From the IMG/VR virus record IMGVR_UViG_3300042558_003926, positions 225,652-289,651 of that record: a DNA stretch of 64,000 nt; one strand, written 5' to 3'. The number at the start of each line of letters is the position of its first letter. Position 1 is the first letter of the stretch. The notes below the pieces were generated by a model that did no database searches, was not told the DNA's origin, and worked only from the letters and a program-made list of their open reading frames with translations. Below are positions 1,468 to 56,343 of the stretch, in pieces. Made by a program: the position numbers and the translations under genes.

Positions 1468-1698
1468 CTATTCCTCAGCAGAAACCTCAAATTGGTAGGG
1501 TTCCCCGAGGATGGGCTCTGTCCCCTCGTAATATTCGATATACCAAAACACTGGATTATCCAAACTTGCTTCCTTGTAGTCGACGTAATATTTAGTTACG
1601 TCTTCAGCTGTTTTAGGAAGTCCGTAGTAATCAGCACACGATTTCCTTGCATCTATAGCCTCTTGTTCAGTTGTATATTTATATCCATCAATAAACAT
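1468..1698 (-). CDS. small phage protein downstream of fibre-like gene
   Basis: 76-aa ORF overlapping the stop of 1688..3385. Confidence 0.75.
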   Translation of the reverse strand: MFIDGYKYTTEQEAIDARKSCADYYGLPKTAEDVTKYYVDYKEASLDNPVFWYIEYYEGTEPILGEPYQFEVSAEE

Positions 1699-3385
1699 CC
1701 CAGTAAGTATTTATGTTTGATTCTATTCCTGTTCTATTTGCACTCTGATCAGAATCCCAATATATGTATTCAGCATATCTACCCGAAGTTGTGCCCGATC
1801 CGGTTCGGCCAAAGTAAATAAAATTAGCACCAGTTGCTGGAATTTGGGTGGCTGTCGTAGCCGAAGCGCTACCGTTAACATAAGCAGTTTTTAAATCACT
1901 TGAATTTTTTTCCGAAGTAATTATAAACGCACCTACATTAACATCGAACCCATGGCTTACCAGAGAACTCATGTCGCTCCTCAATCTTCCCGTTGTAGCT
2001 TGCCAATATAAAGGTTGCTGACCCTGTATGCCGCCAATAGTACTATTACCAATTGAACCGATATTAATAGTATTCGAAGTTCTATTGACAACACCTACCG
2101 ATAAATATCGTGTATTTGGACTTATCCCAGATGCTAATGAATAACTATCATTTACCCAAGTAGTGGTTATTTTACCTGTATTTGGGTCTGTTATAATTGA
2201 ACCACCTGAAACAATTTGAGCTTGATCTGCTGTTGCTGCTTGTGTTGAATTATTCGAGTTTGTACTTTGGTCATACCAGGTTGTTACAAAACCACCACCT
2301 GCTGAAGCTAACGTTTTTTGATATGCCCTAAGATCTGCTGTTTTACTTAATTGAAAGCCCCAAACATAAGCACCAGAAGTACCGTCCCCCGCATAGGCTA
2401 ACTCTCCATTCGCAGCTCTTAAATAAATTCTAAAACAATTTGAAGTAGAAGTTTGCCCAGCAGTAATTTTAACTGAAAATCTATACCACCCGTTAGATTC
2501 TGCTGATATTACGGGCGAATTCGTAAAATTGCTACCCGATATAGTTCCATCTATTAAATTTATGACGCAAGCTTGTGTAGTTCCGGGTAGGAGTGATTCA
2601 AATCTTACGCTTGTTCTTTCTCCTTGTTTTAGATATAGAGATAAATTATAATCCGCTCCAATTACAGCAGTAACTCCTCCAGTTTTGTTCAATATATGGG
2701 TTGCATCTGATGTACCTTCGATAAGTTTATCACCGGATAGGGTATTGTCTGGAGCTGTTATAACATTTAAATAGGGAGGAGTCCCAGTTACATTTAAAGA
2801 GGCATACGAGTAGGTGGACGTCTGACTTATATCTTCCGAATATGTTGTTATATTATAACCTATGAAATCGAGTAAACCTACCGTGTCCAGATCATTGGAA
2901 GAAAATCCTATATCTTGTTCAGCGTCATCCAACGATCTTCTTACCCTTATGGCACTTCCAGAGTAAGCTGTTCTGAGTTTACGCAACGAATAAGCTAATG
3001 CTGCATTTGGGTATAGATCAAGTAAAGGTGTAATTAGGGGGAAAGAAGTCCAATATCCATTATTATTTAAATATGTCTTTGCGGAAGATCCGTCCGAAAA
3101 AGATTGGCCAAATATACTGTTTGTTAGATCAACAAAAGATTGCTCCGTTAATGATCCGCTTCTCCAAAATCCAACTGATGCTCCCAATCCATCTGGTGTG
3201 GGTTGATTCCCCCCGGGAACTGATGCCGCTATAACATATCCTAGATCCTCATCCGGACCATTCCACCAGCTAACCCCAGTAGATCCAAACCCAGATGATG
3301 GGTATCCGACAGCCAGGTTACCAACCTGTTCGGTTCCTGCAATAGAAGCTCCTGTGTTATATGCGAATGGTCTTGCTGTTGGCAT
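1688..3385 (-). CDS. virion surface/fibre protein (LamG/ConA-like domain with inserted head-spike-fibre-like domain)
   Basis: Motifs AYSLRKLRTAYSGSAIRVRR and FVTTWYDQS flank a segment with NGWYRFSV and YAGDGTSGAYVWGFQL; Ser/Thr/Gly-rich; GAATATATAAAG directly before ATG. Confidence 0.7.
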   Translation of the reverse strand: MPTARPFAYNTGASIAGTEQVGNLAVGYPSSGFGSTGVSWWNGPDEDLGYVIAASVPGGNQPTPDGLGASVGFWRSGSLTEQSFVDLTNSIFGQSFSDGSSAKTYLNNNGYWTSFPLITPLLDLYPNAALAYSLRKLRTAYSGSAIRVRRSLDDAEQDIGFSSNDLDTVGLLDFIGYNITTYSEDISQTSTYSYASLNVTGTPPYLNVITAPDNTLSGDKLIEGTSDATHILNKTGGVTAVIGADYNLSLYLKQGERTSVRFESLLPGTTQACVINLIDGTISGSNFTNSPVISAESNGWYRFSVKITAGQTSTSNCFRIYLRAANGELAYAGDGTSGAYVWGFQLSKTADLRAYQKTLASAGGGFVTTWYDQSTNSNNSTQAATADQAQIVSGGSIITDPNTGKITTTWVNDSYSLASGISPNTRYLSVGVVNRTSNTINIGSIGNSTIGGIQGQQPLYWQATTGRLRSDMSSLVSHGFDVNVGAFIITSEKNSSDLKTAYVNGSASATTATQIPATGANFIYFGRTGSGTTSGRYAEYIYWDSDQSANRTGIESNINTYWDVY

Positions 3386-7413: not shown

Positions 7414-8094
7414 TTAGTTCCCGATCATCACGGGAATCGGTGTTCCCACTGGATAAGGAAATCCTTCCTTAGCTGCTGTTACTGAGGTCTGTCCGTTTTT
7501 GACAGGGATTGCAACACGAAGAGGAACTGCATCCTCATTCAAAGGCCCGTAAACTCTAGCCAGTACAATACCGGTTTCGGTTGTATCGAATATTACACCA
7601 GGCATGGCAAACATGTTGCTCTCGCTTGTTGCTGGATCTGACATATCAATTACAAATGCACGATTAACCGGTGACATCAACTCCCATTTCTTGCTATCAG
7701 GATTGAACTGTGGGATAACGGTTGTGGTGTCAAAGTACCAGAATAGAGACCAAACGGTGTTGTCAGTGCCATCTGGGGTTTGAAAATTGCTGGCAACATT
7801 AAAGTCTCCCCAGGTTCCACCACTACCGTACATGGCCAAGTTAGAGATAGAAGGTCCATTAAGTACAGGACAGATAGCGCACCCTTCACGATACTCAACG
7901 CCCTGAATTGTTATGGTCTTTCCAGTAGGAACTGCTGCAGAAGCTCCACAGAAAGCGAATTGACCTTCGTGAATTCTAAGAACCCCCGCTTCTTTCTCTT
8001 GTGCAACTTCGATTTGTGTCTCATGCTTCTTATCCGAGCATGATGTAAAAGCAAGAATTGCGGCTACCATTAATAGTATTTTTGTTCTTTTCAT
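7414..8094 (-). CDS. putative lipoprotein
   Basis: Signal peptide with lipobox-like LAFTSC; GGATATATAAG upstream. Confidence 0.7.
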   Translation of the reverse strand: MKRTKILLMVAAILAFTSCSDKKHETQIEVAQEKEAGVLRIHEGQFAFCGASAAVPTGKTITIQGVEYREGCAICPVLNGPSISNLAMYGSGGTWGDFNVASNFQTPDGTDNTVWSLFWYFDTTTVIPQFNPDSKKWELMSPVNRAFVIDMSDPATSESNMFAMPGVIFDTTETGIVLARVYGPLNEDAVPLRVAIPVKNGQTSVTAAKEGFPYPVGTPIPVMIGN

Positions 8095-8199
8095 TTTTGT
8101 TTATTTGTTATTTATAATTATTTCTCTGAACTTATATATCCACCGATTTCTGACAGCTATCAAAGAATATAGCCCGCTTCAACATCAAGTAACTTACCC

Positions 8200-8228
8200 C
8201 ACAAAAAAAGCAGACCGGAATCTGCTTT
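8200..8228 (-). terminator. intrinsic terminator
   Basis: AAAGCAGA-TTCCGG-TCTGCTTT followed by TTTTGTG on the minus strand, after 8249..8710. Confidence 0.7.
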
Positions 8229-8248
8229 CTAAATGCTTATGAGTTTAC

Positions 8249-8710
8249 TTATCCTATGTAAGTTTTGATGAATTCATCAACACCCATTAATTCTGTGTGA
8301 CCGTGATGGTCGATACAAAGCAATTTACCTTCAACTAGGTCAAATAAACGAGCTTCTTCGTAAACTTGGAAAGAATCACTACCGTTGTTCTCATTACCAA
8401 GTCTACCATCTTTAGCTATGTAGTAAGCATAATCCTCTGTGTTAGTGCTATTCGGCACCGCCTCAAATTCTCCATTCTCGTCATGAATTACATAACCCAT
8501 TCCTGTTACATCGACATCGAAGATTTTTAATTCGTCTTCAGTTCCAGGAAATTCGGCAGCAAGTCTGTCAATAGCACTTTGCAATTTCTCTTTCTGAACT
8601 TCGTCGATGATTCCTACTGCTGCATAAGCATCTCCCTGAAAGCAAGTAGCATATCTTCTACCGGATCTTTGTGTGGGACCGAAGTTCTCAAATAATCTAA
8701 GGTGTTTCAT
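8249..8710 (-). CDS. CTS-leader protein
   Basis: MKHLRLFENF; GAGATATATAAA upstream. Confidence 0.8.
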   Translation of the reverse strand: MKHLRLFENFGPTQRSGRRYATCFQGDAYAAVGIIDEVQKEKLQSAIDRLAAEFPGTEDELKIFDVDVTGMGYVIHDENGEFEAVPNSTNTEDYAYYIAKDGRLGNENNGSDSFQVYEEARLFDLVEGKLLCIDHHGHTELMGVDEFIKTYIG

Positions 8711-8772
8711 TTTAGTTTATTTTTTTTGGTTTATATATCTCCAAATATAAGGAAGAATTGCGGAAGAATCAT

Positions 8773-9447
8773 TTATATCATACCCTTAAATCCATGGTAA
8801 GCCCTTATCAATTCCAGTCTCTTTATTTCTTCCGGCCCCACCCACTCGAACTCTGGTTTGTAGAGTAGCATCTGATCCTCTAACGGGATCTCGCTCCAAA
8901 GTGACTCTACAGCCTCCTGATAGCTCATCTCATCTTCCATTTGGTAGAATATACTCCTGAGTGTATCCTCAGAAACCGGATTATTTACACATTTGAACAT
9001 CCCTCCGATTTTCTGAGGGGCACCTTCGAGAGAGGTGAGCTGGTTGTTGCTACAATTGAAATCGCTACCGATTTCCTGTGGTGCTCCCTCCAGTGAGGTA
9101 AGCTGGTTGTTGTTACAAAAGAAATCAAGGCCAACTCTCTTTGGTGATCCCACCAGCGAGGTGAGCTGATTGTCGTCACAATAGAAACCCTCAGCCTCCT
9201 GTGGTGCTCCCTCCAGTGAGGTGAGACGGTTGTCCTCGCATGAAAAATATGCTCTCACTACACCAAATCTAACTCCTTTAAAATCTGTCAGATCCTGTCC
9301 AGTGCAGCTAAAGCTCCCATCCACATCAACAAGTCCGGTATGAGGATTAATAGTCCATTTATCAGAGCACTCATCAAGCCACTCGATCTGCTCCGGGGTA
9401 AGCTCTACCGCACTCTCAAACATCTTATATGTCTTTAGATTCTTCAT
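8773..9447 (-). CDS. CTS-leader variable LRR protein (4 full repeats)
   Basis: MKNLKTYKMFES; xVGxxFxCxxNQLTSLxGAP units; conserved N- and C-caps ending GFKGMI. Confidence 0.9.
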   Translation of the reverse strand: MKNLKTYKMFESAVELTPEQIEWLDECSDKWTINPHTGLVDVDGSFSCTGQDLTDFKGVRFGVVRAYFSCEDNRLTSLEGAPQEAEGFYCDDNQLTSLVGSPKRVGLDFFCNNNQLTSLEGAPQEIGSDFNCSNNQLTSLEGAPQKIGGMFKCVNNPVSEDTLRSIFYQMEDEMSYQEAVESLWSEIPLEDQMLLYKPEFEWVGPEEIKRLELIRAYHGFKGMI

Positions 9448-9449
9448 TC

Positions 9450-10505
9450 CTATATCATACCCTTAAATCCTTGGTAAGCCTTTAACGCTTCCAGCTTCCT
9501 TCCCTCCTCTGGACTCACCCACTCGAACTCTGGTCTGTACAGCAGAGCCTGATCCTCTATAGGGATCTCATTCCAGAGTGATTCCATAGCCTGGATGTAA
9601 CTCTTCCCTTTCTCCATGGGGTATAATATTCTCCTGAGTGTCTCTTCAGAAACCGGATTGCTCTCGGAATAGAAAATCCCATTAATCTCCCGTGGTGCCC
9701 CATCCAGTGAGGTGAGCTGGTTGTTTTCGCAGAAGAAACCCCCTCTGACCCGCTGTGGTGCTCCCTCCAGTGAGGTGAGCTGGTTGTTCCTGCAAATGAA
9801 ATCCTCTCCAACCTCCTGTGGTGCTCCCTCTAGTGTGGTGAGCTGATTGTGGTCACAACTGAACCAAAATCCAACCTTCTGTGGTGCTCCCACCAGTGAG
9901 GTGAGCTGGTTGTTGCTACAATTGAAAGCCTGTCCAACACTCTGCGGTGCTCCCTCCAGAGAGGTGAGCTGGTTGTTGGTACACTTGAAACTCCCTCTGA
10001 CCCGCTGTGGTGCTCCCACCAGTGATGTGAGCCGGTTGTTCTCACAATAGAAATACCCAGCAATCTCCTGTGGTGCTCCCACCAGTGATGTGAGCCGGTT
10101 GTTCTGGCAATAGAAATACCCACCAACATCCTGTGGTGCTCCCTCCAGTGAGGTGAGCTGGTTGTTGCTACAATTGAAATCCTGCCCAACACTCTGTGGT
10201 GCTCCCACCAGTGAGGTGAGCTGGTTGTCGTGGCAATAGAAATCCCCTCCAACATCCTGTGGTGCTCCCTCCAGTGAGGTGAGCTGATTGTTCCGGCAAA
10301 TGAAATCCTCACTGACCACTCCAAACCTAACGTCTTTAAAATCTGTCAGATCCTGTTCAGAGCAATCGAAATCCCCATCCACATCAACCAGTCCGGTTTG
10401 TGGATTAATAGTCCATTCATCAGTGCACTTGTCCAACCACTCGATCTGCTCTGGTGTAAGCTCTACCGCACTCTCAAACATCTTATATGTCTTTAGATTC
10501 TTCAT
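9450..10505 (-). CDS. CTS-leader variable LRR protein (10 full repeats)
   Basis: 21-aa/63-nt periodicity; same caps. Confidence 0.9.
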   Translation of the reverse strand: MKNLKTYKMFESAVELTPEQIEWLDKCTDEWTINPQTGLVDVDGDFDCSEQDLTDFKDVRFGVVSEDFICRNNQLTSLEGAPQDVGGDFYCHDNQLTSLVGAPQSVGQDFNCSNNQLTSLEGAPQDVGGYFYCQNNRLTSLVGAPQEIAGYFYCENNRLTSLVGAPQRVRGSFKCTNNQLTSLEGAPQSVGQAFNCSNNQLTSLVGAPQKVGFWFSCDHNQLTTLEGAPQEVGEDFICRNNQLTSLEGAPQRVRGGFFCENNQLTSLDGAPREINGIFYSESNPVSEETLRRILYPMEKGKSYIQAMESLWNEIPIEDQALLYRPEFEWVSPEEGRKLEALKAYQGFKGMI

Positions 10506-10506
10506 T

Positions 10507-11193
10507 TTATATCATACCTTTAAATCCTTGGTAAGCTCTTAACGCTTCCAGCTTCCTTCTCTCCTCTGGACTCACCCACTCGAACTCTGGTCTGTACAAC
10601 AGAGTCTGATCTTCTAACGGAATCTTGCTCCAGAGTGATTCCACAGCCTGCATGTGACTCTCCCCTTTCTTCATGAGGGAGAATATTCTCTTGAGTGTTT
10701 CATTAGAAACTGGGTTGCCGTAGCAATAGAAAATCAATCTCACCCGCTGTGGTGCTCCCACTAGAGAAGTGAGCTGGTTGTTGTCACATCTAAAATCCCC
10801 TTCAACCTCCCGTGGTGCACCCTCCAGTGAGGTGAGCTGATTGTTGTTACAATAGAAATCCCATCCAACCTTCTGTGGTGCTCCCTCCAGTGTGGTGAGC
10901 TGGTTGTCACTACAACTGAAACCCCCACCAACCCGCTGTGGTGCTCCCTCCAGTGTGGTGAGCTGGTTGCCGTAGCAATAGAAATACCCACTGACCACTC
11001 CAAACCTAACGTCTTTAAAATCTGGCAGATCCATACGAGAGCAGCCAAAATCCCCATCCACATCAACCAGTCCGGTTTGTGGATTGAGTGTCCAGGTACC
11101 ATCAATGCACTCGTCAAGCCACTCGATCTGCTCTGGTGTAAGTTCTCCTACACTCTCAAACAGTTGGCGATATGTCTTTAGATTCTTCATCAT
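10507..11193 (-). CDS. CTS-leader variable LRR protein (4 full repeats)
   Basis: Paralog; start may be the second ATG at 11190. Confidence 0.9.
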   Translation of the reverse strand: MMKNLKTYRQLFESVGELTPEQIEWLDECIDGTWTLNPQTGLVDVDGDFGCSRMDLPDFKDVRFGVVSGYFYCYGNQLTTLEGAPQRVGGGFSCSDNQLTTLEGAPQKVGWDFYCNNNQLTSLEGAPREVEGDFRCDNNQLTSLVGAPQRVRLIFYCYGNPVSNETLKRIFSLMKKGESHMQAVESLWSKIPLEDQTLLYRPEFEWVSPEERRKLEALRAYQGFKGMI

Positions 11194-11197
11194 AATA

Positions 11198-12010
11198 CTA
11201 TATCATACCTTTAAATCCTTGGTAAGCTCTTAACGCTTCCAGTTTTCTTACCTCCTCTGGACTCACCCACTCGAACTCTGGTCTGTACAACAGAGCCTGA
11301 TCCTCTACTGGAATCTCGTTCCAGAGTGTCTCCACAGCCTGAATGTAACTCTCCCCTTTCTTCATGAGGGAGAATATGCTCTTAAGAGTCTCCACAGAAA
11401 CTGGGTTGTTCTCACAATAGAAATAATCCCGTCCGATCTCCAGTGTTGCTCCCTCCAATGAGGTGAGCTGGTTGTCCCCACAATAGAAATACCCATCCAC
11501 CTTCTGTGGTGCTCCCTCCAGTGTGGTGAGCTGATTGTTCTCACAATTGAACCTCCCTCCAACCCGCTGTGGTGCTCCCTTCAGTGAGGTGATCTGGTTG
11601 CCGTTACACTCGAAATACCCTCCAACCTTCTGTGGTGCTCCCTCCAGTGTGGTGAGCTGATTGTTGTTACAAAAGAAACCACTTCTGACCCGCTGTGGTG
11701 CTCCCACCAGTGAGGTGAGCTGGTTGTTGCTACAACTGAAATGCTCTCCAACCTCCTGTGGCGATCCCTCCAATGAGGTGAGCTGGTTGTTCCTACAATT
11801 GAAACTCCCACTCACCACTCCAAACTTAACGCCTTTAAAATCTGTCAGGTCCTGTCTAAAGCAATCGAAGTCTCCTTTCACATCAACCAGTCCTGTTCGT
11901 GGATTGATCTTCCAGGTACCATCAGTGAACTTGTCCAGCCACTCGATCTGCTCTGGTGTGAGCTCTTGTGTGTTCTCAAACATTTGGCGATATGTCTTTA
12001 GATTCTTCAT
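11198..12010 (-). CDS. CTS-leader variable LRR protein (6 full repeats)
   Basis: Paralog; TAA-ATG junction with upstream gene. Confidence 0.9.
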   Translation of the reverse strand: MKNLKTYRQMFENTQELTPEQIEWLDKFTDGTWKINPRTGLVDVKGDFDCFRQDLTDFKGVKFGVVSGSFNCRNNQLTSLEGSPQEVGEHFSCSNNQLTSLVGAPQRVRSGFFCNNNQLTTLEGAPQKVGGYFECNGNQITSLKGAPQRVGGRFNCENNQLTTLEGAPQKVDGYFYCGDNQLTSLEGATLEIGRDYFYCENNPVSVETLKSIFSLMKKGESYIQAVETLWNEIPVEDQALLYRPEFEWVSPEEVRKLEALRAYQGFKGMI

Positions 12011-12757
12011 TTATATCATACCTTTAAATCCTTGGTAAGCCTGGAGAGCTTCCAGCTTTCTTCTCTCCTCTGGACTCACCCACTCGAACTCTGGTCTGTA
12101 CAGCAGAGCCTGATCCCCTAATGGAATCTCACCCCAGAGAGACTCCACAGCCTGAAGATAGCTCTCACCCTTCGTCATGGTGGAGAAGATGCTCTTGAGT
12201 GTCCCTTTGGAAACTGGGTTGCCCTCACAATTGAAATGCCGTCCGATCTCCCGTGGTGCTCCCTCCAGTGAGGTGAGCTGGTTGTTACTACAATAGAAAT
12301 ACCTCCCAACCTTCTGTGGTGCTCCCTCCAGTGTGGTGAGCTGATTTCCCTCACAAATGAAATCACCCTCAACCTTCTGTGGTGCCCCCACCAGTGAGGT
12401 GAGCTGGTTGTTGTCACACCTGAAACGCTCTCCTACCTCCTGTGGTGCCCCCACCAGTGAGGTGAGCTGGTTGTTGTTACAATAGAAACCCTCACCAACC
12501 TTCTGTGGTGCTCCCTCCAGTGAGGTGAGCTGGTTGTAGTCACAACCGAAATCCTTACTCACCACTCCAAACCTAATCCCTTTGAAATCCGTCAGATCAT
12601 GTTCAGAGCAATCGAAGTCTCCTTTCACATCAACCAGTCCTGTTCGTGGATTGATCTTCCAGGTACCATCAATGCACTCGTCAAGCCACTCGATCTGCTC
12701 TGGTGTGAGCTCTCCCACACTCTCAAACAGTTGGCTATATGTCTTTAGATTCTTCAT
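12011..12757 (-). CDS. CTS-leader variable LRR protein (5 full repeats)
   Basis: Paralog; TAA-ATG junction. Confidence 0.9.
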   Translation of the reverse strand: MKNLKTYSQLFESVGELTPEQIEWLDECIDGTWKINPRTGLVDVKGDFDCSEHDLTDFKGIRFGVVSKDFGCDYNQLTSLEGAPQKVGEGFYCNNNQLTSLVGAPQEVGERFRCDNNQLTSLVGAPQKVEGDFICEGNQLTTLEGAPQKVGRYFYCSNNQLTSLEGAPREIGRHFNCEGNPVSKGTLKSIFSTMTKGESYLQAVESLWGEIPLGDQALLYRPEFEWVSPEERRKLEALQAYQGFKGMI

Positions 12758-13630
12758 TTATATCATGCCTTTAAATCCAGCGTAAGCCTTAATGACATCC
12801 AGCTTCTTACCAAACTCTGGACTCACCCACTCGAACTCTGGTCTGTATAACAGAGCCTGATCATCTAATGGAATCTCGTTCCAGAGTGTCTCCACAGCCT
12901 GCAGGTAGCTATTCCCTTCCTTCGTGAGGGAGAATATGCTCTTGAGTGTCTCTTCAGAAACGGGGTTTTTCTCACAATAGAAACCCCCTCCAACCTTTTG
13001 TGGTGCTCCCTCCAGAGAGGTAAGTTGGTTTCTATCGCAATTGAAACTTCCACCGACCTCCTGTGGTGCTCCCTCCAGTGAGGTGAGGTTGTTGCCCTCA
13101 CAAAGGAAACGCTCTCCTACCTCCTGTGGTGCCCCCTCCAGCGAGGTGAGCTGGTTGTTGTTACAACTGAAACCTCTTCCGACCCGCTGTGGTGCTCCCT
13201 CCAGTGAGGTGAGCTGGTTGTCGCTGCAATAGAAATCATGTCCAACCCGCTGAGGTGCTCCCTCTAGGGAGATGAGCTGGTTGTCCTCACAATTGAAATT
13301 CGCTCCGACTTCCTGAGGTGCTCCCACCAGCGAGGTGAGCTGGTTGTACCTACAATAGAAATCCTCTCCAACCTTCTGTGGTGCTCCCTCTAGGGAGATG
13401 AGCTGGTTGTTGCTGCAATAGAAATACCCACTGACCACTCCAAACCTAATCCCTTTGAAATCTGTCAGGTCCTGTTCAGAGCAATTGAAATCCCCATCCA
13501 CATCAACAAGTCCGGTTTGTGGATTGATCTTCCAGGTACCATCAGTGCACTTGTCCAACCACTCGATCTGCTCTGGTGTAAGCTCTCCCACACTCTCAAA
13601 CAGTTGGCGATACGTCTTCAGATTTTTCAT
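12758..13630 (-). CDS. CTS-leader variable LRR protein (7 full repeats), first gene of the array
   Basis: GATATATAG at 13635-13643 immediately upstream. Confidence 0.9.
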   Translation of the reverse strand: MKNLKTYRQLFESVGELTPEQIEWLDKCTDGTWKINPQTGLVDVDGDFNCSEQDLTDFKGIRFGVVSGYFYCSNNQLISLEGAPQKVGEDFYCRYNQLTSLVGAPQEVGANFNCEDNQLISLEGAPQRVGHDFYCSDNQLTSLEGAPQRVGRGFSCNNNQLTSLEGAPQEVGERFLCEGNNLTSLEGAPQEVGGSFNCDRNQLTSLEGAPQKVGGGFYCEKNPVSEETLKSIFSLTKEGNSYLQAVETLWNEIPLDDQALLYRPEFEWVSPEFGKKLDVIKAYAGFKGMI

Positions 13631-13660
13631 CCCACTATATATCTCTCAATATAAGGCATC

Positions 13661-13725
13661 ATCCCGGTCTAAAAAAAAATGTGTTGGGGGCTTTTGGGAC
13701 CAAATCCCCAGGAGGGGCCCGCCCA
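13661..13725. repeat. GC-rich element upstream of left LRR array, inverted-homologous to 47377-47456
   Basis: ATCCCGGTCTAAAA and CCAGGAGGGGCCCGCC approximate reverse complements of TTTTAGACCCGGGGGATG and GGCCGGCCCTCCTGG. Confidence 0.55.
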
Positions 13726-13838
13726 CCAAATAGATGTAGTATATGTTCCGTCTCCTATAGATAGAGGTAGTGATAGATAGAGTACAGTCACACACACTAA
13801 AGAGCATGAGCACACAATCGCATATAGACAAGGTAAAC

Positions 13839-14192
13839 ATGAAACCTAATCTACTACCTTATCCACACCATGTAGCAGCACCTAAGATAGAGACAGTAGA
13901 TCTATCAGCGTTCAATACACTACAGGCACACAAGGTGAGCAAGTCACTACAGAAGAGAGCAGAGGAGATAGCTAGTGCTGTGAAATCCCTACAAGAAGAC
14001 TATGCACTCAACCTACAGCTATACTCTGCAACCAGATCATTCGAGCCTGTACTAGGAGAGGTGTATCATCTATATGAGAAGGCAGATGGCACCCAGTTCC
14101 TAAGTCTCATATCTCCCAGAGAATGGAAGCAGAAGTACCTGTATTCTGGTGTGCTAAACTCCGATGGTACCTGGACCCGAGTAGATCTGTAG
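13839..14192 (+). CDS. DUF2452-like protein
   Basis: LLPYPHHVAAPKI...FEPVLGEVYHLY...FLSLISP.EW pattern recalled for this Bacteroidota-enriched family; start moved to MKPNLL. Confidence 0.65.
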   Translation: MKPNLLPYPHHVAAPKIETVDLSAFNTLQAHKVSKSLQKRAEEIASAVKSLQEDYALNLQLYSATRSFEPVLGEVYHLYEKADGTQFLSLISPREWKQKYLYSGVLNSDGTWTRVDL

Positions 14193-14199
14193 GAGATCC

Positions 14200-14745
14200 C
14201 AGAACTGATCCCAAACTAACCCCCAACAACATAGTATGTTAGTAAGATAGTATGCACAGCCATGTTCATCTGAGTGGGAAGCACGTGGAGGCACTCATAT
14301 AGGTACTCGTATGCGAAAACTTGGCCCTCCCGGCAGCCCCTCTCCAGGGCCGAGCAACCACCCAGGGTGCGAACAAGGGTGTTCTCGGATAGCCCCGTTA
14401 GCCCGGGTTAACCACCCCCGCTTAGCCCGGGTTAACCCAGCCTCCCACTAACCCGGGGTAATTCCTGGTAAGCAATGGTAAAAACTGGAATTTTAGCCCG
14501 GGTTAACTAGGTTAACTCGGCCCGCCCCGAATCCCTAGGATTTCTCGCCCCGATTCCAGCCTCAGACACCGCGGTTATCTCTTAGGTATCTCGCCTCGCC
14601 TCACTCTACCTCTCTCTATAGGATCAGGAGACGGAATCTACTCATGTCTACTCTATCTATAGGGAGAAGGATAAGGATAATACATAACTATTTGGGGCGG
14701 GTTTCCCACGGTGTTACCCCTCAGAAAACCCCCCGAAGAATTTGG
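14200..14745. repeat. GC-rich non-coding block with TTAGCCCGGGTTAAC repeats
   Basis: Copies at 14398, 14422 and 14493; inverted repeats to 13746-13766. Confidence 0.65.
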
Positions 14746-14759
14746 ATATATAGATCACT

Positions 14760-15554
14760 ATGAAACATGTTAAAATATTTGAAGAGTATATCCCAGGAGG
14801 CAGAGCCTCTGGCAAGAGCCTAAAGGATCTCGCCAAGATCCACGGTGTAGGAATCAAGAGCCTGGAGAAGCAGCTGAAGGTTGGCGTAGCCGTTGAGATG
14901 GAACACACCAACAGTGAGGCCAAGGCCGAGGAGATAGCTATGGATCACCTAGCAGAAAACCCACGGTATTACACTCGGCTTATCCGGAAGGGATTCGTGG
15001 ATGAACCAAAGGCTCTGAAGATCTATAAGGAACTCTATGAGGGAGACTGGTTTGATAATCTAAGTTACCACCCGGCAAACCAACCAGATGGACCTGATCC
15101 AACAAGGGAGATCGAATACACCCCGGCCCAACAGAAGTTTACCACTATGTCATTCCTAGGTGATAGCAGCATTGGCTTTACTCTGCTGCATGGCAAGGAC
15201 TCCGTGGGAGGTGGAGCTTGGGTGCTTAACATCGATGAGGTTCCGGATGACTATCAGCTGATCACTGTCTATGGAGATGATGAAGAGAATGAGACGGAGA
15301 TTGATGAGGACACTTGCATCAACTACGCTACTGATCTCTGGGATGCTAGAGATAGAGATGTTGAGAATGTAGGAGAAGGCATGGAAGGCTGGGAAGATGG
15401 TAAGTTGCTATGTAAGCTAGATGCTGAACTGGCAGAGGATTTGATTGGCACTATGGAGTTCGTGATGAGAAGAGGTAATTACGGTCCTGGTTCTAATATC
15501 AAGAAAAAAGTCTCTGGTGCTGTCTATGAGCTAAGCAAACTATTTGAGCTGTGA
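14760..15554 (+). CDS. CTS-leader protein with DUF5661-like domain
   Basis: MKHVKIFEEY; GVAVEMEHT...EIAMDHLAENPRYY; GATATATAG at 14745. Confidence 0.75.
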   Translation: MKHVKIFEEYIPGGRASGKSLKDLAKIHGVGIKSLEKQLKVGVAVEMEHTNSEAKAEEIAMDHLAENPRYYTRLIRKGFVDEPKALKIYKELYEGDWFDNLSYHPANQPDGPDPTREIEYTPAQQKFTTMSFLGDSSIGFTLLHGKDSVGGGAWVLNIDEVPDDYQLITVYGDDEENETEIDEDTCINYATDLWDARDRDVENVGEGMEGWEDGKLLCKLDAELAEDLIGTMEFVMRRGNYGPGSNIKKKVSGAVYELSKLFEL

Positions 15555-30858: not shown

Positions 30859-31260
30859 ATGAATCAAGTTAAAGTATTCGAGTTCTTTCAAGAAGGGGAA
30901 GGAGGAACACCAGTATCCAATTTGTCTAGTACATCCTATTGGGCAGAGTTTGATGAGAACGACGGAAAAACAGCAGATGACTGGGCCAACGATCCAGGAT
31001 TTCAAAATCTAGAGAAGAATCTGGGTATTAGTCCAGATTATCTTTTAGCTCTCAATAGCGAGGGTGATGATGTTGAAAAATTCAAAGGTGTGATTGCCAA
31101 TTCATTACCAGAGAAAACTGTTAAGAGCACTCAGGAATATGTGACCAGTTGGGAGTACTACACAGATTTAGGTATTGCAGTTGCCTGTGGTAATGGAGGT
31201 GCACCAGATTGGTTTTTCGTATTGAAGACTCCAGAAGTAGAATTAGTAGAGGCTATCTAA
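30859..31260 (+). CDS. hypothetical early protein
   Basis: TATATTTG at 30826; terminator after. Confidence 0.8.
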   Translation: MNQVKVFEFFQEGEGGTPVSNLSSTSYWAEFDENDGKTADDWANDPGFQNLEKNLGISPDYLLALNSEGDDVEKFKGVIANSLPEKTVKSTQEYVTSWEYYTDLGIAVACGNGGAPDWFFVLKTPEVELVEAI

Positions 31261-43784: not shown

Positions 43785-44414
43785 ATGAAACACATAAAAG
43801 GATTTGGATTGTTTGAAGCAGTTATCATGCCATCCAAGATAGAAGATGATGCTCCTGTGAATTCTTTTGAATCAGCGGTAGAGTTCGGTCGGAGAAATGG
43901 ATTTGAAGTTGTTGACTATGACGAGTTCTATAACTCTCTAGGAGAAGCAGATAAGAGAACTGCACCACCAAGAAGAGGCACGCCTTTCTTTGCTCTCTTC
44001 CATCCCATCAGAAAAATCCCTATGTTTGTTCTTGCTGATCCGAATGCTACAAGGATCATTCCCAACTTCAAAGAGATCATGCTAGATATCATCGGTCATG
44101 AGATGGTACACTCGGAGCAATTAAGAAGAAGAGGAGGTATAGAATTTGCTCTTCCAGATCCTTTAGATAAAAAAGCTTACTTCTCCAACAAGGAGGAGAT
44201 CATGGCATTCTCGTTCACTATCGCCAATGATCTAGCTAAAACACAAAGCAATCCAGAGGAGGCCATGAAAGAATTGGATAGGGTAACTCCATTCTCGCCA
44301 AGAGGTCCACAGTATAAGATGGTCTGGGATTCTATTAGAAGAAACTGTGACGAAAAGACAATCAGAAAATACCGTAAGTACATCTACATGTATTTGACCA
44401 AAATGCTGAACTAG
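43785..44414 (+). CDS. CTS-leader protein with zincin-like HExxH motif
   Basis: MKHIKGFGLFEA; IGHEMVHSEQ...KEEIMAFS. Confidence 0.7.
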   Translation: MKHIKGFGLFEAVIMPSKIEDDAPVNSFESAVEFGRRNGFEVVDYDEFYNSLGEADKRTAPPRRGTPFFALFHPIRKIPMFVLADPNATRIIPNFKEIMLDIIGHEMVHSEQLRRRGGIEFALPDPLDKKAYFSNKEEIMAFSFTIANDLAKTQSNPEEAMKELDRVTPFSPRGPQYKMVWDSIRRNCDEKTIRKYRKYIYMYLTKMLN

Positions 44415-44438: not shown

Positions 44439-45992
44439 ATGGAAAGGATAAAACTATTTGAAGCATTCGAGGGAAGATCTCCAGAGATTAGATCTTATCT
44501 GAATATGTTCGGTTCTCTAAGCGAGAACATAGCAGCTGCAAAGTCATTCATGCAGAGGGAGTACGCAAAGAAAAAGAAAATAGATCCCAAGGATCTAACT
44601 CCGGAAGAAAGAGAGCAGGCTTTAGATAATAGAGGCTACAAGGAGATACTGAAGCTCATTGGGGACAAGCACGGATACGCATCTGCATTTGTCAAGTTTC
44701 ACTTTGAGCAGGGTGTGCCTATTAATCTTCCGGGTAGAGCAGATGGGGATGGAGAGATTAGAGATCTCGCCTCTCTATTCAATCTGATGATCACCAAGAA
44801 ACACGTGGTGTCCAGAATACCTATGAATATCGATCAGTATGCTGCATCCGATGAGATAAACGGGGTTAGTGGATTTGAGGCTCTAACTGATGCTATCAGA
44901 ACCATAGAGAGAGCCGATGGTGCTAAATGGTTTACGGATAGACTACCTAAGAAATCAAGAGATGGCTTCAGAAGCATGTCCCCCGAGGACAAGAACAGGG
45001 TGATCAATGCAGCTTATGCTCTAGAGGATCTCGGAAAGGAGGTCACCGAGAGATTGCTTTCCAAGATTAAAGCCATGGATTCTTGGACTATAGATCAGGT
45101 GATGGATTACACCAACAACTACCTCTCTGGATACAGTAATCTTGAGATGAAGAAGAAAATGGACGAGATAGCAGAGCTAGAACCAGGTGCTGGTGTACTC
45201 TACTTTGATGACAAGTATCTAGCTATTACGGTTAGAACAGATAAGGCTCAAAGAGCTCTTTGCTCCATAGCTAACTGGTGCATTAACCGTGGATCCTTTA
45301 ACAACTATGCAGGAGAAGGAAGCCGAGGAAAGGGAATCCAGGTCAACATCTTCGATTACACCAAAGATCCCACAGATCCATATTTCCTAACAGGCACAAC
45401 AATCAGCAATGACGGTAGAGTTACTGACTCTCACGACATCAACGACAGAAGCATCAAAAAAGGTACAGAACCAGGAGTTCATTTTAAAGGTCTAGGTTAT
45501 CCTCAGGACATGGTGGATGATCTAGTAAAAGGTATTCCCATAGAGATAGCAACCAAGAAGATTCTAGATTCTTTAGGTACAGCCAATGCACTGGAGATGA
45601 TTAAGAACCTTATCCAATTAAGAAAGGGATTGATCGCTGGAAGAGTGTCTGATGACATCTGGGGAAAAGCACTTCAGATCTCTTCGGATATAATCAAGGA
45701 AGATTCAGATATAAAGGTAAGCACTATAATACAGCGTTTCAAAGAAAGCGGTATTGTAACCGAGAATGGTCTCGTGGTCTTTAAAGCTCTGGCTGGTGAC
45801 GCCTACACAAGAGAGGATGCTAAAGCCATTATCGAGATGAGCGAGAGAAACTTTAACAATATGGTGTACCTTTTAGAGCTTTATGATGAAGGACTCATAT
45901 CTAATAAAAGTAGTGACATCAATCAAGATGCCATTAGAGAAACCATTAAAAACAAAGACGAAGTGCTAGCTAAGCTGAAAGAGGAGCTATAG
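44439..45992 (+). CDS. large CTS-leader protein
   Basis: MERIKLFEAF; internal ALCSIANWCI motif seen in large-phage proteins. Confidence 0.8.
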   Translation: MERIKLFEAFEGRSPEIRSYLNMFGSLSENIAAAKSFMQREYAKKKKIDPKDLTPEEREQALDNRGYKEILKLIGDKHGYASAFVKFHFEQGVPINLPGRADGDGEIRDLASLFNLMITKKHVVSRIPMNIDQYAASDEINGVSGFEALTDAIRTIERADGAKWFTDRLPKKSRDGFRSMSPEDKNRVINAAYALEDLGKEVTERLLSKIKAMDSWTIDQVMDYTNNYLSGYSNLEMKKKMDEIAELEPGAGVLYFDDKYLAITVRTDKAQRALCSIANWCINRGSFNNYAGEGSRGKGIQVNIFDYTKDPTDPYFLTGTTISNDGRVTDSHDINDRSIKKGTEPGVHFKGLGYPQDMVDDLVKGIPIEIATKKILDSLGTANALEMIKNLIQLRKGLIAGRVSDDIWGKALQISSDIIKEDSDIKVSTIIQRFKESGIVTENGLVVFKALAGDAYTREDAKAIIEMSERNFNNMVYLLELYDEGLISNKSSDINQDAIRETIKNKDEVLAKLKEEL

Positions 45993-46885: not shown

Positions 46886-47278
46886 ATGAAACATCTTAGA
46901 AGATTTAATGAGAGCGCAAACACAAACCTAGAGGAGATTACTCCAGGTAGATTTGTGTATCACTTGTCTGCACCAGTATACAGAGACCAGATAGAAAGAA
47001 TCGGGTTACTTCCTAAAAGAGGGGAACAGTGGTTAACCAATACTCCAATTGAGGGAGAAGCTATATTTGCAACTGATAGTGATAACGAGGAAGATTGGTA
47101 CGATTCCTCTTATGATGACGATGTTTATGAGATAGACACGGATAAAATTAGTAATAAGTGGTACGTGGATCCTAATTTCCAAGTTCAAGACTACTCCAAA
47201 CACATAGTTACCTTTGATAAAATACCTTCATCTGCAATCTCTCTAATACATAGAGGAACTGGGGATTCTAAATACTAG
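46886..47278 (+). CDS. CTS-leader ADP-ribosyltransferase-fold protein
   Basis: MKHLRRFNES; FVYHLS...IERIGLLP...AIFAT. Confidence 0.6.
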   Translation: MKHLRRFNESANTNLEEITPGRFVYHLSAPVYRDQIERIGLLPKRGEQWLTNTPIEGEAIFATDSDNEEDWYDSSYDDDVYEIDTDKISNKWYVDPNFQVQDYSKHIVTFDKIPSSAISLIHRGTGDSKY

Positions 47279-47554: not shown

Positions 47555-48298
47555 ATGAAGAATCTAAAGACCTATAAGATGTTTGAGAGTGTGGGTGAGC
47601 TTACACCGGAGCAGATCGAGTGGCTTGATGAGTGCACTGATGGTACCTGGACACTCAATCCACAAACAGGACTGGTTGATGTGAAGAGGGATTTCTATTG
47701 TACTGGAGAGAACCTGACAGATTTCAAAGGAGTTAGGTTTGGGGTGGTCGAAGGAGATTTCAATTGCCATAACAATCAGCTCACCACACTGGAGGGAGCA
47801 CCTCATGAGGTTGGTGGAAATTTCGATTGCGACAACAATCAGCTCACCACACTGGAGGGAGCACCGCGGAAGGTTGGAGATATTTTCGGTTGTAGAGGAA
47901 ACCAGCTCACCTCACTGGTGGGAGCACCTCATGAGGTTGGTAGTGATTTCTATTGCCATAACAATCAGCTCACCACACTGGAGGGAGCACCACAACGGGT
48001 TGGAAGGAATTTCAGATGTGACAACAACCAGCTCACTTCTCTAGTGGGAGCACCACAGGATGTTGAAGGGGATTTCTATTGTGGGGACAACCCAGTTTCT
48101 GAAGAGACACTCGATAACATATTCTACCGCATGACGGAAGGAGAGAGTTATATCAAGGCTGTAGAGTCTCTCTGGAGCAAGATTCCGTTAGAAGATCAGG
48201 TGCTGCTATACAGACCTGAGTTTGAGTGGGTAAGTCCAGAGGAGAGAAGAAAGCTGGAAGCGTTAAAGGCTTACCATGGATTTAAAGGTATGATATAA
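47555..48298 (+). CDS. CTS-leader variable LRR protein (5 full repeats)
   Basis: Start moved to MKNLKTY; GATATATAG at 47532; caps nearly identical to the left array. Confidence 0.9.
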   Translation: MKNLKTYKMFESVGELTPEQIEWLDECTDGTWTLNPQTGLVDVKRDFYCTGENLTDFKGVRFGVVEGDFNCHNNQLTTLEGAPHEVGGNFDCDNNQLTTLEGAPRKVGDIFGCRGNQLTSLVGAPHEVGSDFYCHNNQLTTLEGAPQRVGRNFRCDNNQLTSLVGAPQDVEGDFYCGDNPVSEETLDNIFYRMTEGESYIKAVESLWSKIPLEDQVLLYRPEFEWVSPEERRKLEALKAYHGFKGMI

Positions 48299-49045
48299 AT
48301 GAAGAATCTAAAGACCTATAAGATGTTTGAGAGTGTGGGTGAGCTTACACCGGAACAGATGAACTTTATGAACATGTGTGCACCGGAGGGAAATTGGCAA
48401 TTTAATCCAGAGACTGGAGAGGTTGACGTGGATGGAAATTTTGGCTGCTCTCGTATGGATCTGCCAGATTTTAAAGGGATACGATTCGGTGAGGTCACAG
48501 GAGATTTCCTATGCAGAACGAATAGACTCACTTCGTTAGAAGGAGCACCCCGTGAAGTTGGTGGTGAATTTGATTGCAGGGATAATCAGATCACTTCACT
48601 AGAGGGAGCACCACAGAAAGTGGGCACCGATTTTGACTGCGGAAGAAATCAGCTCACTTCACTGGTAGGAGCACCACAGGAGATAGCTGGAACTTTCGGC
48701 TGCGAGGAGAACAATCTAGAAAACCTAATTGGAGCACCTAGAAGAGTTGGTGAAGACTTCTGGTGCAGACGAAATCAACTCACCTCACTGGAGGGTGTTC
48801 CAGAGAGAATTGGAGACACACTCTATTCTGGTAAGAATCCAGTTTCTGAGGACGCATTCTTAAGCATCTATGATATGATGAACAAAGGCGAATCTTACAT
48901 AGGAGCTGTTGAAGCTGTTTGGCCGGAACTTGGTGGCGAAGACAAGATGCTCCTATATCGTCCCGAATTCTCTTGGGTTAGTGGAGATGAGCTTAAAGGA
49001 ATCAAGGCAATGCTTGCCTACAAGGGGATTAAATTTATGCTGTGA
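48299..49045 (+). CDS. CTS-leader variable LRR protein (5 repeats, more diverged)
   Basis: TAA-ATG junction; ends YKGIKFML. Confidence 0.9.
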   Translation: MKNLKTYKMFESVGELTPEQMNFMNMCAPEGNWQFNPETGEVDVDGNFGCSRMDLPDFKGIRFGEVTGDFLCRTNRLTSLEGAPREVGGEFDCRDNQITSLEGAPQKVGTDFDCGRNQLTSLVGAPQEIAGTFGCEENNLENLIGAPRRVGEDFWCRRNQLTSLEGVPERIGDTLYSGKNPVSEDAFLSIYDMMNKGESYIGAVEAVWPELGGEDKMLLYRPEFSWVSGDELKGIKAMLAYKGIKFML

Positions 49046-50506: not shown

Positions 50507-51142
50507 ATGAAGAATCTAAAAACATATCAGCAACTTTTCGAATCCGCCAAGGATGATCTAGGATACGGACTCGATGACGTAAGAAAACTTACACTATACA
50601 AGGCTTTACTTGCTTTGGGGTGGGAAGACATCTCTACCGATAGAGGCGAGAATGATCTGACTATTAAGCTTAAACACCCAAAACATGGGGATTATAAGTA
50701 TCTGACGGTTCAGGCTAACGGCCAAGTCAGAACATACTACAGGGGAAACTACTACCCGTGGATCACTTATAAAATGAGACCAAAGGTCAAGAGAGAGTAT
50801 GGAGATCGTTATAAAAATGCTGCAGACTGGAACGATTCCCTTCTTTACCTTTTAAACTGGACTTACAAGACAATGGGAATGGGCCTTAATCTTAAAGGAG
50901 TAGGGAAAAAGATTGGCGGTTGGAAAAGTGGTTCCGAGTATTCTATTCCCGACGATATTCTGATCGATCTTCTGGAGCATATGTTCAGAGAGGGAGACCC
51001 TGAGATATTTCTTTCTGTTTACTCCAACTCTGACGATGACGTAAGAGAGAAATTAGTCAAAAGACTGAATATTGACGACGACAGGATAAATAAGATCATG
51101 AATGCCAAGATCAATGTCGGGTCAGCTATGAAATTTACATAA
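50507..51142 (+). CDS. CTS-leader protein
   Basis: MKNLKTYQQLFES; AATATATAG upstream. Confidence 0.8.
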   Translation: MKNLKTYQQLFESAKDDLGYGLDDVRKLTLYKALLALGWEDISTDRGENDLTIKLKHPKHGDYKYLTVQANGQVRTYYRGNYYPWITYKMRPKVKREYGDRYKNAADWNDSLLYLLNWTYKTMGMGLNLKGVGKKIGGWKSGSEYSIPDDILIDLLEHMFREGDPEIFLSVYSNSDDDVREKLVKRLNIDDDRINKIMNAKINVGSAMKFT

Positions 51143-51144
51143 AT

Positions 51145-51765
51145 ATGAAACACCTTAATAACTGGAAACTATTCGAATCTGAAGAGGAACAAGGGCAAGG
51201 ACAAGAACCGGAAATCGGATCTAAAAATAGGTACCAAGGATTCTGTCTAACCGCTTCCTGGTCATATGATCGTAGTGACGCAGCCACTCTAATGGTTGCA
51301 GCTAGCTGTCTAACTCTTCAGGAATTCTTTAATCATGTTTGGACAGAATTTAGCGGAGACGAGGACGAGTACGAGGACTTATCCGATATTCAGGATATTA
51401 GCGATTTAATAGATCATATTGCTGATTCCATGGAGATTTATCCGGATTGGGAATTATGGTGTGGTTTGGAGCCTAAACGACAGGAAAGCGATATGGATTC
51501 TTCATCTTTAGCCAATCCAATAATATCAGCCAACATACTAAATTCAATGTTCAGTAATGTTCAGGAAATCATGGGCAGCAATAGCAAGAGCACCAAAGAC
51601 GACGAGAATATGGCTATAGCTAGATCCATAGAGAACTCACCAGAGCTTATATCAATGTACATTAACTACCCTAAATTTGATGAGATTAAAAAATTCATCA
51701 ATTTGGATAATAAAAAAATAGATCTGCTCATCAACTACTATCAGAATATAAAGGGAATGATCTAA
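51145..51765 (+). CDS. acidic CTS-leader protein ending KGMI
   Basis: MKHLNNWKLFES; C-terminus YYQNIKGMI resembles the LRR proteins. Confidence 0.8.
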   Translation: MKHLNNWKLFESEEEQGQGQEPEIGSKNRYQGFCLTASWSYDRSDAATLMVAASCLTLQEFFNHVWTEFSGDEDEYEDLSDIQDISDLIDHIADSMEIYPDWELWCGLEPKRQESDMDSSSLANPIISANILNSMFSNVQEIMGSNSKSTKDDENMAIARSIENSPELISMYINYPKFDEIKKFINLDNKKIDLLINYYQNIKGMI

Positions 51766-52277
51766 TGAAGCATCTAAAGCCATACGACGTATTTTCTGAT
51801 TTATCCCACATAGACGAGGCTATATCATGGTCTGATGTTAAATCAGCATATAAAAGAGCTAAACATGTGGCTATGAATGTTATTAGAGCTTTTAAACACG
51901 AGGGCAAAGAAACTGCTGATATGATGAGGGTTTTTAATTATCAGCTAAGAAAGAAATTAAATCTAGAAACTAGAAGAGATGCTCCGAGTCCAGAAGAAAT
52001 TACTAGCGCTCTCGAACAGCTAAAGGATATTCCAAAACTTGCTCCTTATGCGGTTATTCTACTTACATCCCCAATTCCATTTTCATCTACCATGTACACT
52101 GGAGCTGCTATCTACCTCAAGAAAGTGACCAGGGGATATCTTAACTTACTACCTGATTCGTTCTCTGATGTGTTTAAAGGAATAGAAGACAGCGAGGTTG
52201 AGATAGAAAGGGATAGAAAGGAAATTGAATTCAAAGAGGATCCGCAAGATCCAGCAAAGTGGATAGATGTTAAATAG
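51765..52277 (+). CDS. CTS-leader protein
   Basis: MKHLKPYDVF...IDEA. Confidence 0.75.
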   Translation: MKHLKPYDVFSDLSHIDEAISWSDVKSAYKRAKHVAMNVIRAFKHEGKETADMMRVFNYQLRKKLNLETRRDAPSPEEITSALEQLKDIPKLAPYAVILLTSPIPFSSTMYTGAAIYLKKVTRGYLNLLPDSFSDVFKGIEDSEVEIERDRKEIEFKEDPQDPAKWIDVK

Positions 52278-56133: not shown

Positions 56134-56343
56134 ATGGAAAACCTTAAAGAGTATAACGATTTTCTTTTTGAAAAAAGAGGGGTAAGCCCAGTTATTTACA
56201 ATGATTTAGAATTCTTCTTTAGCAGCGTGAAATATCCTGCTTACGAGGAGGCTAAAAAATTCATAGCTAAATCTCATGATGGTTGGGATCTTTCTAAAGA
56301 GGATTATGAAGAGGCTAAGAAAATGTTCAGAAAAGGAAATTAA
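56134..56343 (+). CDS. CTS-leader small protein
   Basis: MENLKEYNDFLFE; GATATATAAA upstream. Confidence 0.75.
   Translation: MENLKEYNDFLFEKRGVSPVIYNDLEFFFSSVKYPAYEEAKKFIAKSHDGWDLSKEDYEEAKKMFRKGN

Follow-up and report, generated by a model that had tools for sequence, protein, structure and literature searches.

A stretch of 64,000 nucleotides (nt) from the IMG/VR virus record IMGVR_UViG_3300042558_003926 (positions 225,652 to 289,651 of that record; hereafter, the window) contains at 8773-13630 a tandem array of genes coding for leucine-rich repeat (LRR) proteins. Open reading frame (ORF) calling in the window resolves this interval into six intact and contiguous minus-strand ORFs, with gaps of 0-4 nt between successive stops and starts (Table 1). 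N-caps and C-caps are common to the six paralogs, which carry between them 4, 10, 4, 6, 5 and 7 copies (genes 1 to 6) of a unit of 21 amino acids (aa), as had been proposed in an earlier reading of the sequence (the original prediction) and is confirmed here by ORFs, unit anchoring and cap comparison. The encoded proteins are acidic, with isoelectric points (pI) of 4.4-4.9, have masses of 25-39 kDa, and, taking gene 6 as an example, begin with a leader at residues 1-13, after which come the N-cap, the LRR solenoid and a C-cap made of helices. The six genes are only part of the family present in the window, where at least nine copies are found, six in the array and at least three outside it.

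Table 1. LRR genes, neighbouring genes and upstream motif in the 64,000-nt window
Feature	Position	Strand	Description
LRR gene 6	12758-13630	-	290 aa, 7 units; opens both the array and the operon
LRR gene 5	12011-12757	-	248 aa, 5 units; start abuts the gene 6 stop
LRR gene 4	11198-12010	-	270 aa, 6 units
LRR gene 3	10507-11193	-	228 aa, 4 units; second Met at 11190 is the likely start
LRR gene 2	9450-10505	-	351 aa, 10 units; higher-order 189-nt (3-unit) periodicity
LRR gene 1	8773-9447	-	224 aa, 4 units; most diverged among the six
LRR paralog 7	47555-48298	+	~247 aa, 5 units; ATATATAG lies upstream, at 47533
LRR paralog 8	48299-49045	+	248 aa, 5 units; 58% identity to gene 6
Divergent LRR paralog 9	52632-53528	+	298 aa; leader and N-cap as in the array genes
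Non-LRR leader gene	8249-8710	-	153 aa, inside the variable interval; present in locus L041, absent from L033 and L037
Conserved flank DUF2452 gene	13806-14192	+	75-100% identity in syntenic relatives
Conserved flank lipoprotein gene	7414-8094	-	Bacteroidota-type lipobox; 73-88% identity in relatives
ATATATAG promoter-like motif	13635-13642	-	lies 4 nt ahead of gene 6; the array has no other copy

Constant and variable positions of the repeat unit

Units were counted by anchoring on the N-Q-L-T-S-L motif, and their spacing is exactly 21 aa, the sole exception being one 20-aa spacing in gene 1. Tandem Repeats Finder reports arrays of periods 63, 126 and 189 with scores of 221-728, so the repetition is far beyond chance. 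The consensus of the unit is V-G-x-x-F-x-C-x-x-N-Q-L-T-S-L-[E/V]-G-A-P-Q-x, with F5, C7, N10, L15 and G17 invariant in the 36 units of the array. The highest entropy falls at fixed positions (3, 4, 6, 8, 9 and 21, with peaks of 2.0-2.9 bits), bearing out the wide variation previously ascribed to the x positions. At the nucleotide level, 34 of the 63 nt per unit are conserved at 90% or more, synonymous sites and the block quoted in the original prediction included, which is exactly the count given there. Synonymous choice is nearly fixed for Leu12 (CTC), Thr13 (ACC), Gly17 (GGA), Ala18 (GCA) and Pro19 (CCA), each in 30-33 of the 36 units.

The identical set of variable positions and the same entropy profile are recovered from 691 units of 120 homologs, with Tyr, Asp, Ser, Asn, Trp and His abundant at the variable positions, and the LRR pattern F5-x-C7-x-x-N10-x-L12-x-x-L15 is invariant or nearly so in both the 36 units of the window and the 691 of the family. 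Among the 45 units found in the whole window no two are identical, the closest pair being 5/63 nt apart, and their variable-face signatures are all distinct. The modules described as recurring in the original prediction (EDFICRNN, SVGQxFNCSNN and EVGERF) are indeed present, but are not recent copies, all 45 units being unique and separated by at least 5 differences in 63 nt.

Predicted fold and binding face

A profile built from 20 family members matches Listeria InlJ with an E-value of 3.9e-20, its Cys columns aligning to the Cys ladder of InlJ, and the LRR domains of SspH2, IpaH7.8 and SspH1 with E-values from 1e-16 to 1e-10. Cys7 corresponds to the sixth position of the LRR conserved segment in 21-residue units, as in the InlJ-type Cys ladder. 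Matches to Pfam LRR_4 are weak, two of the six genes scoring above the gathering threshold of 27 bits (42.6 and 35) and the other four below it (19-26), while no further Pfam domain beyond LRR was found in the array proteins, nor anything after the C-cap. The AlphaFold2 (AF2) model generated with the family alignment (pLDDT 90.8, pTM 0.83) displays, in this order, disordered residues 1-13, a helix-plus-hairpin N-cap, the solenoid, each unit of which contributes a short strand at x4-F5-x6, and four helices at the C-terminus, the helical C-cap being ~65 aa long. Foldseek relates this model to the LRR domains of SspH1, IpaH and YopM, with template modelling (TM) scores of 0.5-0.6 and 26-29% identity to the SspH1 LRR domain, and, when run on viral models (BFVD), mostly to LRR proteins of giant viruses and also to those of uncultured tailed phages.

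Profile matches and model together indicate that the proteins are Cys-ladder LRR solenoids of the short bacterial type. In the established LRR geometry, residues around the strand (x3, x4, x6, x8 and x9) line the concave face, and the variable positions observed here are predicted to flank or to lie in the β-strand x-F-x-C, that is, on the canonical concave face. The InlJ profile match, the AF2 confidence and the Foldseek results hence favour the solenoid with x positions on its concave face that the original prediction had envisaged, the placement of these positions being deduced from LRR geometry and the predicted strands.

Selection and codon conservation

When evaluated on the 36 array units, the six variable codons yield a dN/dS ratio (omega) of 1.96, with a bootstrap confidence interval of 1.28-3.09, and the scaffold codons one of 0.18, in an estimate that treats the repeat units as independent and is near saturation. 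The caps compared between the six paralogs give omega values of 0.2-0.5, with dS of 0.2-1.0. Since the units are not independent and the estimates are close to saturation, these values are supportive rather than definitive of purifying selection on the scaffold residues and diversifying selection on the residues predicted for the concave face. The dN/dS check proposed with the original prediction consequently falls on its side, with omega ~2.0 at variable codons versus 0.18 in the scaffold and 0.2-0.5 in the caps.

The array raises the guanine-cytosine (GC) content to 0.44-0.49 at 8001-14000 of the window, as compared with ~0.38 elsewhere. Units have ~50% GC in every related contig, with genomes of 35-41% GC, and the codons of the scaffold block are the same in several diverged contigs, both of which make codon bias an unlikely cause of the synonymous conservation of the scaffold. 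The dS of the scaffold block is ~0.3, at the low end of the range of the caps and only modestly below them, so that the case for extra constraint at the nucleotide level or for concerted evolution is a moderate one. This low dS would be compatible with concerted evolution or with recombination, and is proof of neither.

Variation of the locus among relatives

Probing with the DUF2452 flank yielded 51 loci, 10 of which are syntenic contigs with both flanks. In these 10 contigs the interval between the flanks carries 0-6 LRR genes, mixed with other leader-bearing non-LRR cassettes, despite the flanks themselves being 75-99% identical. The array thus sits in a cassette hotspot between two conserved genes. 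When the DUF5661 flank gene was used as an IMG/VR probe, only the same phage was recovered. In two of the relatives (L033 and L037) the flanking genes are 86-99% identical to those of the window and the array is made of four genes (270, 203, 279 and 248 aa), whose best identity to any window gene is 46-72%.

The first-gene alleles of L036 and L037 differ by two units, an indel of 126 nt with an exact repeat of 49 nt at its borders, and at only 3 of the 813 nt outside it. This reads as the signature of in-register unequal recombination, with the caveat that the indel comes from short-read assemblies, in which an assembly artefact is possible in principle. In addition, the first gene of L037 (L037_a) combines a gene-4-type N-cap with a gene-6-type C-cap, on branches with at least 95% bootstrap and at least 80% support in the Shimodaira-Hasegawa-like approximate likelihood ratio test (SH-aLRT), approximately unbiased (AU) tests of the incongruence between cap trees being not significant (p 0.15 and 0.14). 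Another chimeric homolog (P0013), with gene-6 ends and gene-2 repeats, lies on a 1.1-kb short-read contig that may be an assembly chimera, and was not used as evidence.

The recombination between units put forward in the original prediction finds its counterpart in the in-register change of unit number between L036 and L037, subject to the same assembly caveat. Overall, the array evolves by gene gain and loss and apparently also by exchange between paralogs and in-register unequal recombination between units, for which the ~30-nt conserved block present in every unit would supply the homology.

The N-terminal leader

The leader spans ~12 residues and follows the pattern M-K-[N/H]-[L/I/V]-[K/R]-x-[F/Y]...[L/M]-F-E-[S/A], with an [L/M/I/V]-F-E-[S/A] site conserved at residues 8-12, all of it being disordered in the AF2 model. 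It is carried by 17 ORFs of the window, and in related loci it heads 164 of 961 ORFs (~17%), 101 of them non-LRR, while it occurs at 21 of 4,741 internal Met positions. Its features of a hydrophobic residue at position 4, an aromatic one at position 7 and a hydrophobic-x-Glu are kept in relatives with 40-50% identity. Codons of both the leader and the C-terminal tail vary synonymously among families; the leader is therefore conserved as a peptide, and a cause at the nucleotide level, such as a conserved junction or a ribosome-binding cassette, was ruled out.

The N-termini of the T4 internal proteins (IPs) IPII and IPIII, taken from AF158101, begin with M-K like the leader, are likewise hydrophobic at position 4 and aromatic at position 7, and close with a hydrophobic-x-Glu; the match is one of pattern and not of sequence. 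In T4, determinants for targeting are located at residues 4 and 7, and those for processing at residues 8 and 10 (PMC9026906). The T4-like leader noticed in the original prediction is hence real and matches the IPII/IPIII pattern, but it is a clade-wide motif borne by ~17% of ORFs, most of them non-LRR, rather than a trait of the array.

In the window, unrelated ORFans with the leader are situated at 272-1366, 8249-8710, 14760-15554, 30859-31260, 43785-44414, 44439-45992, 46886-47278, 50507-51142, 51145-51765, 51765-52277, 55259-55843 and 56343-56927, and searches of Pfam and PHROGs returned nothing informative for the leader-bearing window proteins other than the LRR ones. Further genes begin with a looser form of it, M-x-x-N-[I/L]-x-[D/E]-F-x-x-F. 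Regarding cultured phages, small genes by the LRR gene of Vibrio phage VB_VaC_TDDLMA (L001 7097-9051) start with M-K-F-K-[Q/E]-[F/Y]-L or similar, and judging from these N-termini comparable leaders may exist in cultured large phages. At the other end of the proteins, the C-terminal helix of the LRR family and its tail Y-x-x-I-K-G-M-I are found in non-LRR proteins (51145-51765 on the plus strand of the window, L043 8669-9208 and L045 7116-7655), so the C-cap looks like a separate module placed on varied central domains.

Upstream motif and other features of the window

The exact ATATATAG 8-mer occurs 16 times in the window versus 3.5 expected (positions 258, 3407, 13635, 14746, 23538, 43774, 46875, 47533, 50485, 52598 and 55184, among others), and its single copy in the array fits a single operon. 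More generally, ATATATA[AG] is found 3-25 nt upstream of many ATGs, including those of the LRR operon, most leader-bearing genes, and the tail, CHAP and peptidoglycan-binding genes, whereas it does not precede the RecA-like gene, the sigma-factor gene or the transferase genes of the window. This distribution weakly suggests that the genes preceded by it share an expression class, possibly a late one, and ATATATAG/ATATATA[AG] is a candidate phage promoter, whose mRNAs would be nearly leaderless.

A non-coding stretch of 560 nt, rich in GC, separates the DUF2452 gene from the DUF5661 gene (14193-14759). It contains palindromic sites resembling AGCCCGGGTTAAC, in three or four copies, as well as a period-24 repeat detected by Tandem Repeats Finder at 14393-14437. 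It may be an operator cluster or an origin; Rfam searches of the window, this stretch included, matched no family. An RpoD-like sigma factor is encoded at 54137-55039 on the minus strand (phrog_351, E 4e-48).

Source phage and spread of the family

The window, which forms the final 64 kb of an IMG/VR contig of 289,651 bp, has ~38% GC and no tRNAs. Besides many ORFans, it codes for a structural protein of the tail or virion, glycosyltransferases, methyltransferases, peptidoglycan-binding proteins, a sigma factor and a RecA-like ATPase. The structural gene (1688-3385; phrog_5939, phrog_10356) is placed ~5 kb from the array. The exact gene-6 protein is found on contigs of up to 337,724 bp, and, within the phage collection searched, the RecA-like gene matches best to LR756508, an uncultured phage of 484 kb; together these point to an uncultured huge phage. 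Its host is probably a member of Bacteroidota, considering the lipobox of the flank lipoprotein and the only match obtained among 185,579 species genomes, a phage-like contig (CALAZP010000171.1) binned into a Saprospirales metagenome-assembled genome, such binning being a weak hint. On that contig, a 500-aa member with ~18 units (L087 409-1911) adjoins a second LRR gene.

The family is very large, almost restricted to phages, and often organized in tandem arrays. It comprises more than 7,600 clusters at 90% identity (E ≤ 0.001), among 8,000 candidates scored, and 2,146 clusters at 50% identity when E ≤ 1e-30 is applied. Other viral contigs, 25-350 kb long and for the most part above 120 kb, carry tandem arrays of 4-11 genes with the same architecture, as does the published 735-kb megaphage LR756501. 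A cultured 195-kb Vibrio phage has a single LRR copy, leaderless and much more homogeneous. Matches to Listeria 'phages', of 24-28% identity, were discarded as generic LRR similarity. As for other contexts of the unit, it appears in multiple blocks inside proteins of 1,000-3,400 aa with almost no Pfam domains (P0121-P0126, P0166, P0180 and P0256), and one 744-aa protein joins it with a PcfJ-like domain.

Discussion

The array represents an undescribed germline and phage-restricted multigene family of putative Cys-ladder LRR binders, housed in a cassette hotspot, no published description of which was found in the literature searched. We infer, with a probability of roughly 0.7, that this operon of six germline paralogs constitutes an inherited repertoire of phage LRR binders. 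Each paralog would bind a different and rapidly changing partner, the likeliest being a host protein, for instance a component of defence or of the surface, and the repertoire would allow the phage to keep pace with variation in its host.

Several aspects weigh against this interpretation: (i) independent assemblies of several samples show 100% identity over the 17.6 kb around the array, with 0-1 nt differences in shorter contigs of the same strain, so that no ongoing diversification is visible within the sampled strain in assemblies that come from at least eight samples overall, (ii) AU tests do not back the mosaic of caps in L037_a, and the two-unit indel could in principle have arisen in assembly, and (iii) omega values come from non-independent units and are near saturation. 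Regarding the first aspect, the identity of the array across assemblies implies that its diversification is germline and not programmed. The comparison of repeat number and order across genomes suggested with the original prediction has accordingly two sides, with variation between relatives, in the form of 0-6 genes and the two-unit indel, and invariance within the strain.

The alternative to which we grant the most weight, somewhat short of an even chance, is that the LRR proteins are intracellular binders for host takeover or counter-defence, made after infection and never packaged. The leader would then serve another end, be it stability, docking to a common phage partner or the initiation of translation on near-leaderless mRNAs. 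The presence of the leader on ~17% of ORFs of many unrelated families, more than expected for a signal of capsid cargo, is in line with it, and so are the very short 5' untranslated regions implied by ATATATA[AG] lying so close to the ATGs, the acidic nature of the proteins and the fact that scans of the window disclosed no prohead protease. On the contrary, the maintenance of leader residues despite synonymous codon change argues for a signal at the peptide level over an mRNA feature, and the pattern of these residues parallels the determinants experimentally mapped in T4.

Such parallelism leads to the packaging step contained in the original prediction. Tentatively, and by analogy with T4, the leader may direct the LRR proteins, together with many unrelated accessory proteins, into the prohead, with its removal at the hydrophobic-x-Glu. 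Against this step stand the failure to find a gp21-type prohead protease within the window and the adjoining 10 kb, the lack of any match in PADLOC, the acidic pI of the array proteins, unlike T4 internal proteins, which are described as basic (PMC9026906), and the large amount of cargo that ~17% of ORFs would entail; a walk from the left edge in search of head genes met only metabolic or unknown genes. The LRR proteins may likewise be injected and act against host defences, as that prediction also suggested. A broader version of the idea, which we consider unlikely, is that the huge-phage clade possesses a general capsid-cargo system, in which dozens of accessory proteins would enter the prohead by means of the T4-like leader. 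The LRR arrays would be its recognition arm, an inherited set of binders under rapid reshuffling, co-injected with the DNA and neutralizing variable host defence proteins before phage gene expression. If true, it would be a phage-side counterpart of pattern-recognition immunity.

Less probable still is that the proteins recognize the host from the virion surface, their caps docking on the tail or baseplate, their LRR face binding host glycans or proteins, and the alternative adaptors setting the host range. The array is close to the tail or virion structural gene and shares with it the upstream ATATATA[AG], its closest sequence match is an internalin, that is, a surface-binding LRR protein, and receptor binders are classic hypervariable genes of phages. 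Moreover, the LRR domains of fibre-like virion proteins in phage Goslar have been proposed as host-recognition elements (bioRxiv 10.64898/2026.04.21.720040). Nonetheless, the array proteins, small LRR-only monomers in the model, have no trimerisation, fibre or known virion-attachment domain, at least nine copies are spread over 64 kb, some far from the tail gene, many unrelated ORFan proteins bear the same leader, and some relatives have zero LRR genes at the locus.

Finally, programmed diversification, in which VLR-like cassette assembly (after lamprey variable lymphocyte receptors) or mutagenesis like that of diversity-generating retroelements (DGR) would rewrite the variable codons within the population, is very improbable: although the variable codons change at bases 1-2 and retain their third base (NNT in codons 4 and 6, NNC in codon 9), which fits adenine-targeted mutagenesis of AAY codons, and conserved nucleotide blocks flank every variable patch, ordinary positive selection would give the same codon pattern, and both mechanisms were rejected in view of an array with 0-1 nt differences in assemblies from at least eight samples, the complete ORF of every gene, the absence of a template/variable repeat pair among 45 unique units with at least 5 mismatches, none of which is a recent copy, and the lack of a reverse transcriptase among the large window ORFs scanned.

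Returning to the inherited repertoire of binders, families of LRR binders lie at the heart of host-pathogen conflict, whether in animals, in plants or in bacterial pathogens, but to our knowledge few accounts of them exist for phages. Should the targets prove to be defence or surface proteins of the host, the family would be a major unexplored class of determinants of phage counter-defence or host range, and also a natural library of small binding scaffolds stabilized by a Cys ladder. The clade-wide leader is a second lead, independent of the LRR arrays; were it a packaging signal, the cargo set of uncultured huge phages could be defined directly from sequence.

Comparison with known systems

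The phage proteins resemble Listeria InlJ (PDB 3bz5) in their 21-aa unit, in which a Cys substitutes for one core hydrophobic residue of LxxLxLxxNxL and is followed by N-x-L-T-x-L. They differ from this internalin in having neither a signal peptide, their leader being polar, nor an inter-repeat Ig-like domain, nor a cell-wall anchor, and in possessing N-cap, C-cap and leader of their own; they would be cytoplasmic or virion proteins. Their best structural matches are the LRR domains of the IpaH/SspH/SlrP proteins and YopM, likewise of the short bacterial type with repeats of 20-21 aa. In these effectors the concave face of the LRR selects host protein targets. The matches cover the LRR domains only, and, unlike IpaH/SspH, the phage proteins have no NEL E3-ligase or other enzymatic domain.

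With lamprey VLRs they share the architecture of LRR-only capped solenoids with a variable number of modules and with diversity concentrated on the predicted concave β-face. In lampreys, germline genes that are incomplete are built up somatically with donor cassettes, whereas the phage genes are complete, inherited and invariant within the sampled strain. Hence, the VLR analogy drawn in the original prediction holds for architecture and fails for mechanism, since the ORFs are complete in the germline, units are not recent copies and the array is identical across assemblies.

As regards T4 IPI, IPII and IPIII, which are anti-restriction cargo (PMC3012670, PMC9026906), the likeness lies in a short conserved N-terminal peptide on otherwise unrelated proteins and, as in the polymorphic IP loci of T-even phages, in a locus content that differs between close relatives, here from 0 to 6 LRR genes. 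The phage proteins are, on the other hand, acidic LRR solenoids of 25-39 kDa and not small basic proteins, and their leader extends to ~17% of ORFs; the link to T4 internal proteins is, therefore, a reasonable hypothesis and not a result. Lastly, and apart from their bacterial host, different repeat type, shared leader and tight operon-like tandem arrangement, the phage genes recall the LRR/FNIP and ankyrin families of giant eukaryotic viruses and poxviruses, which are also multi-copy and fast-evolving repeat proteins encoded in very large viral genomes.

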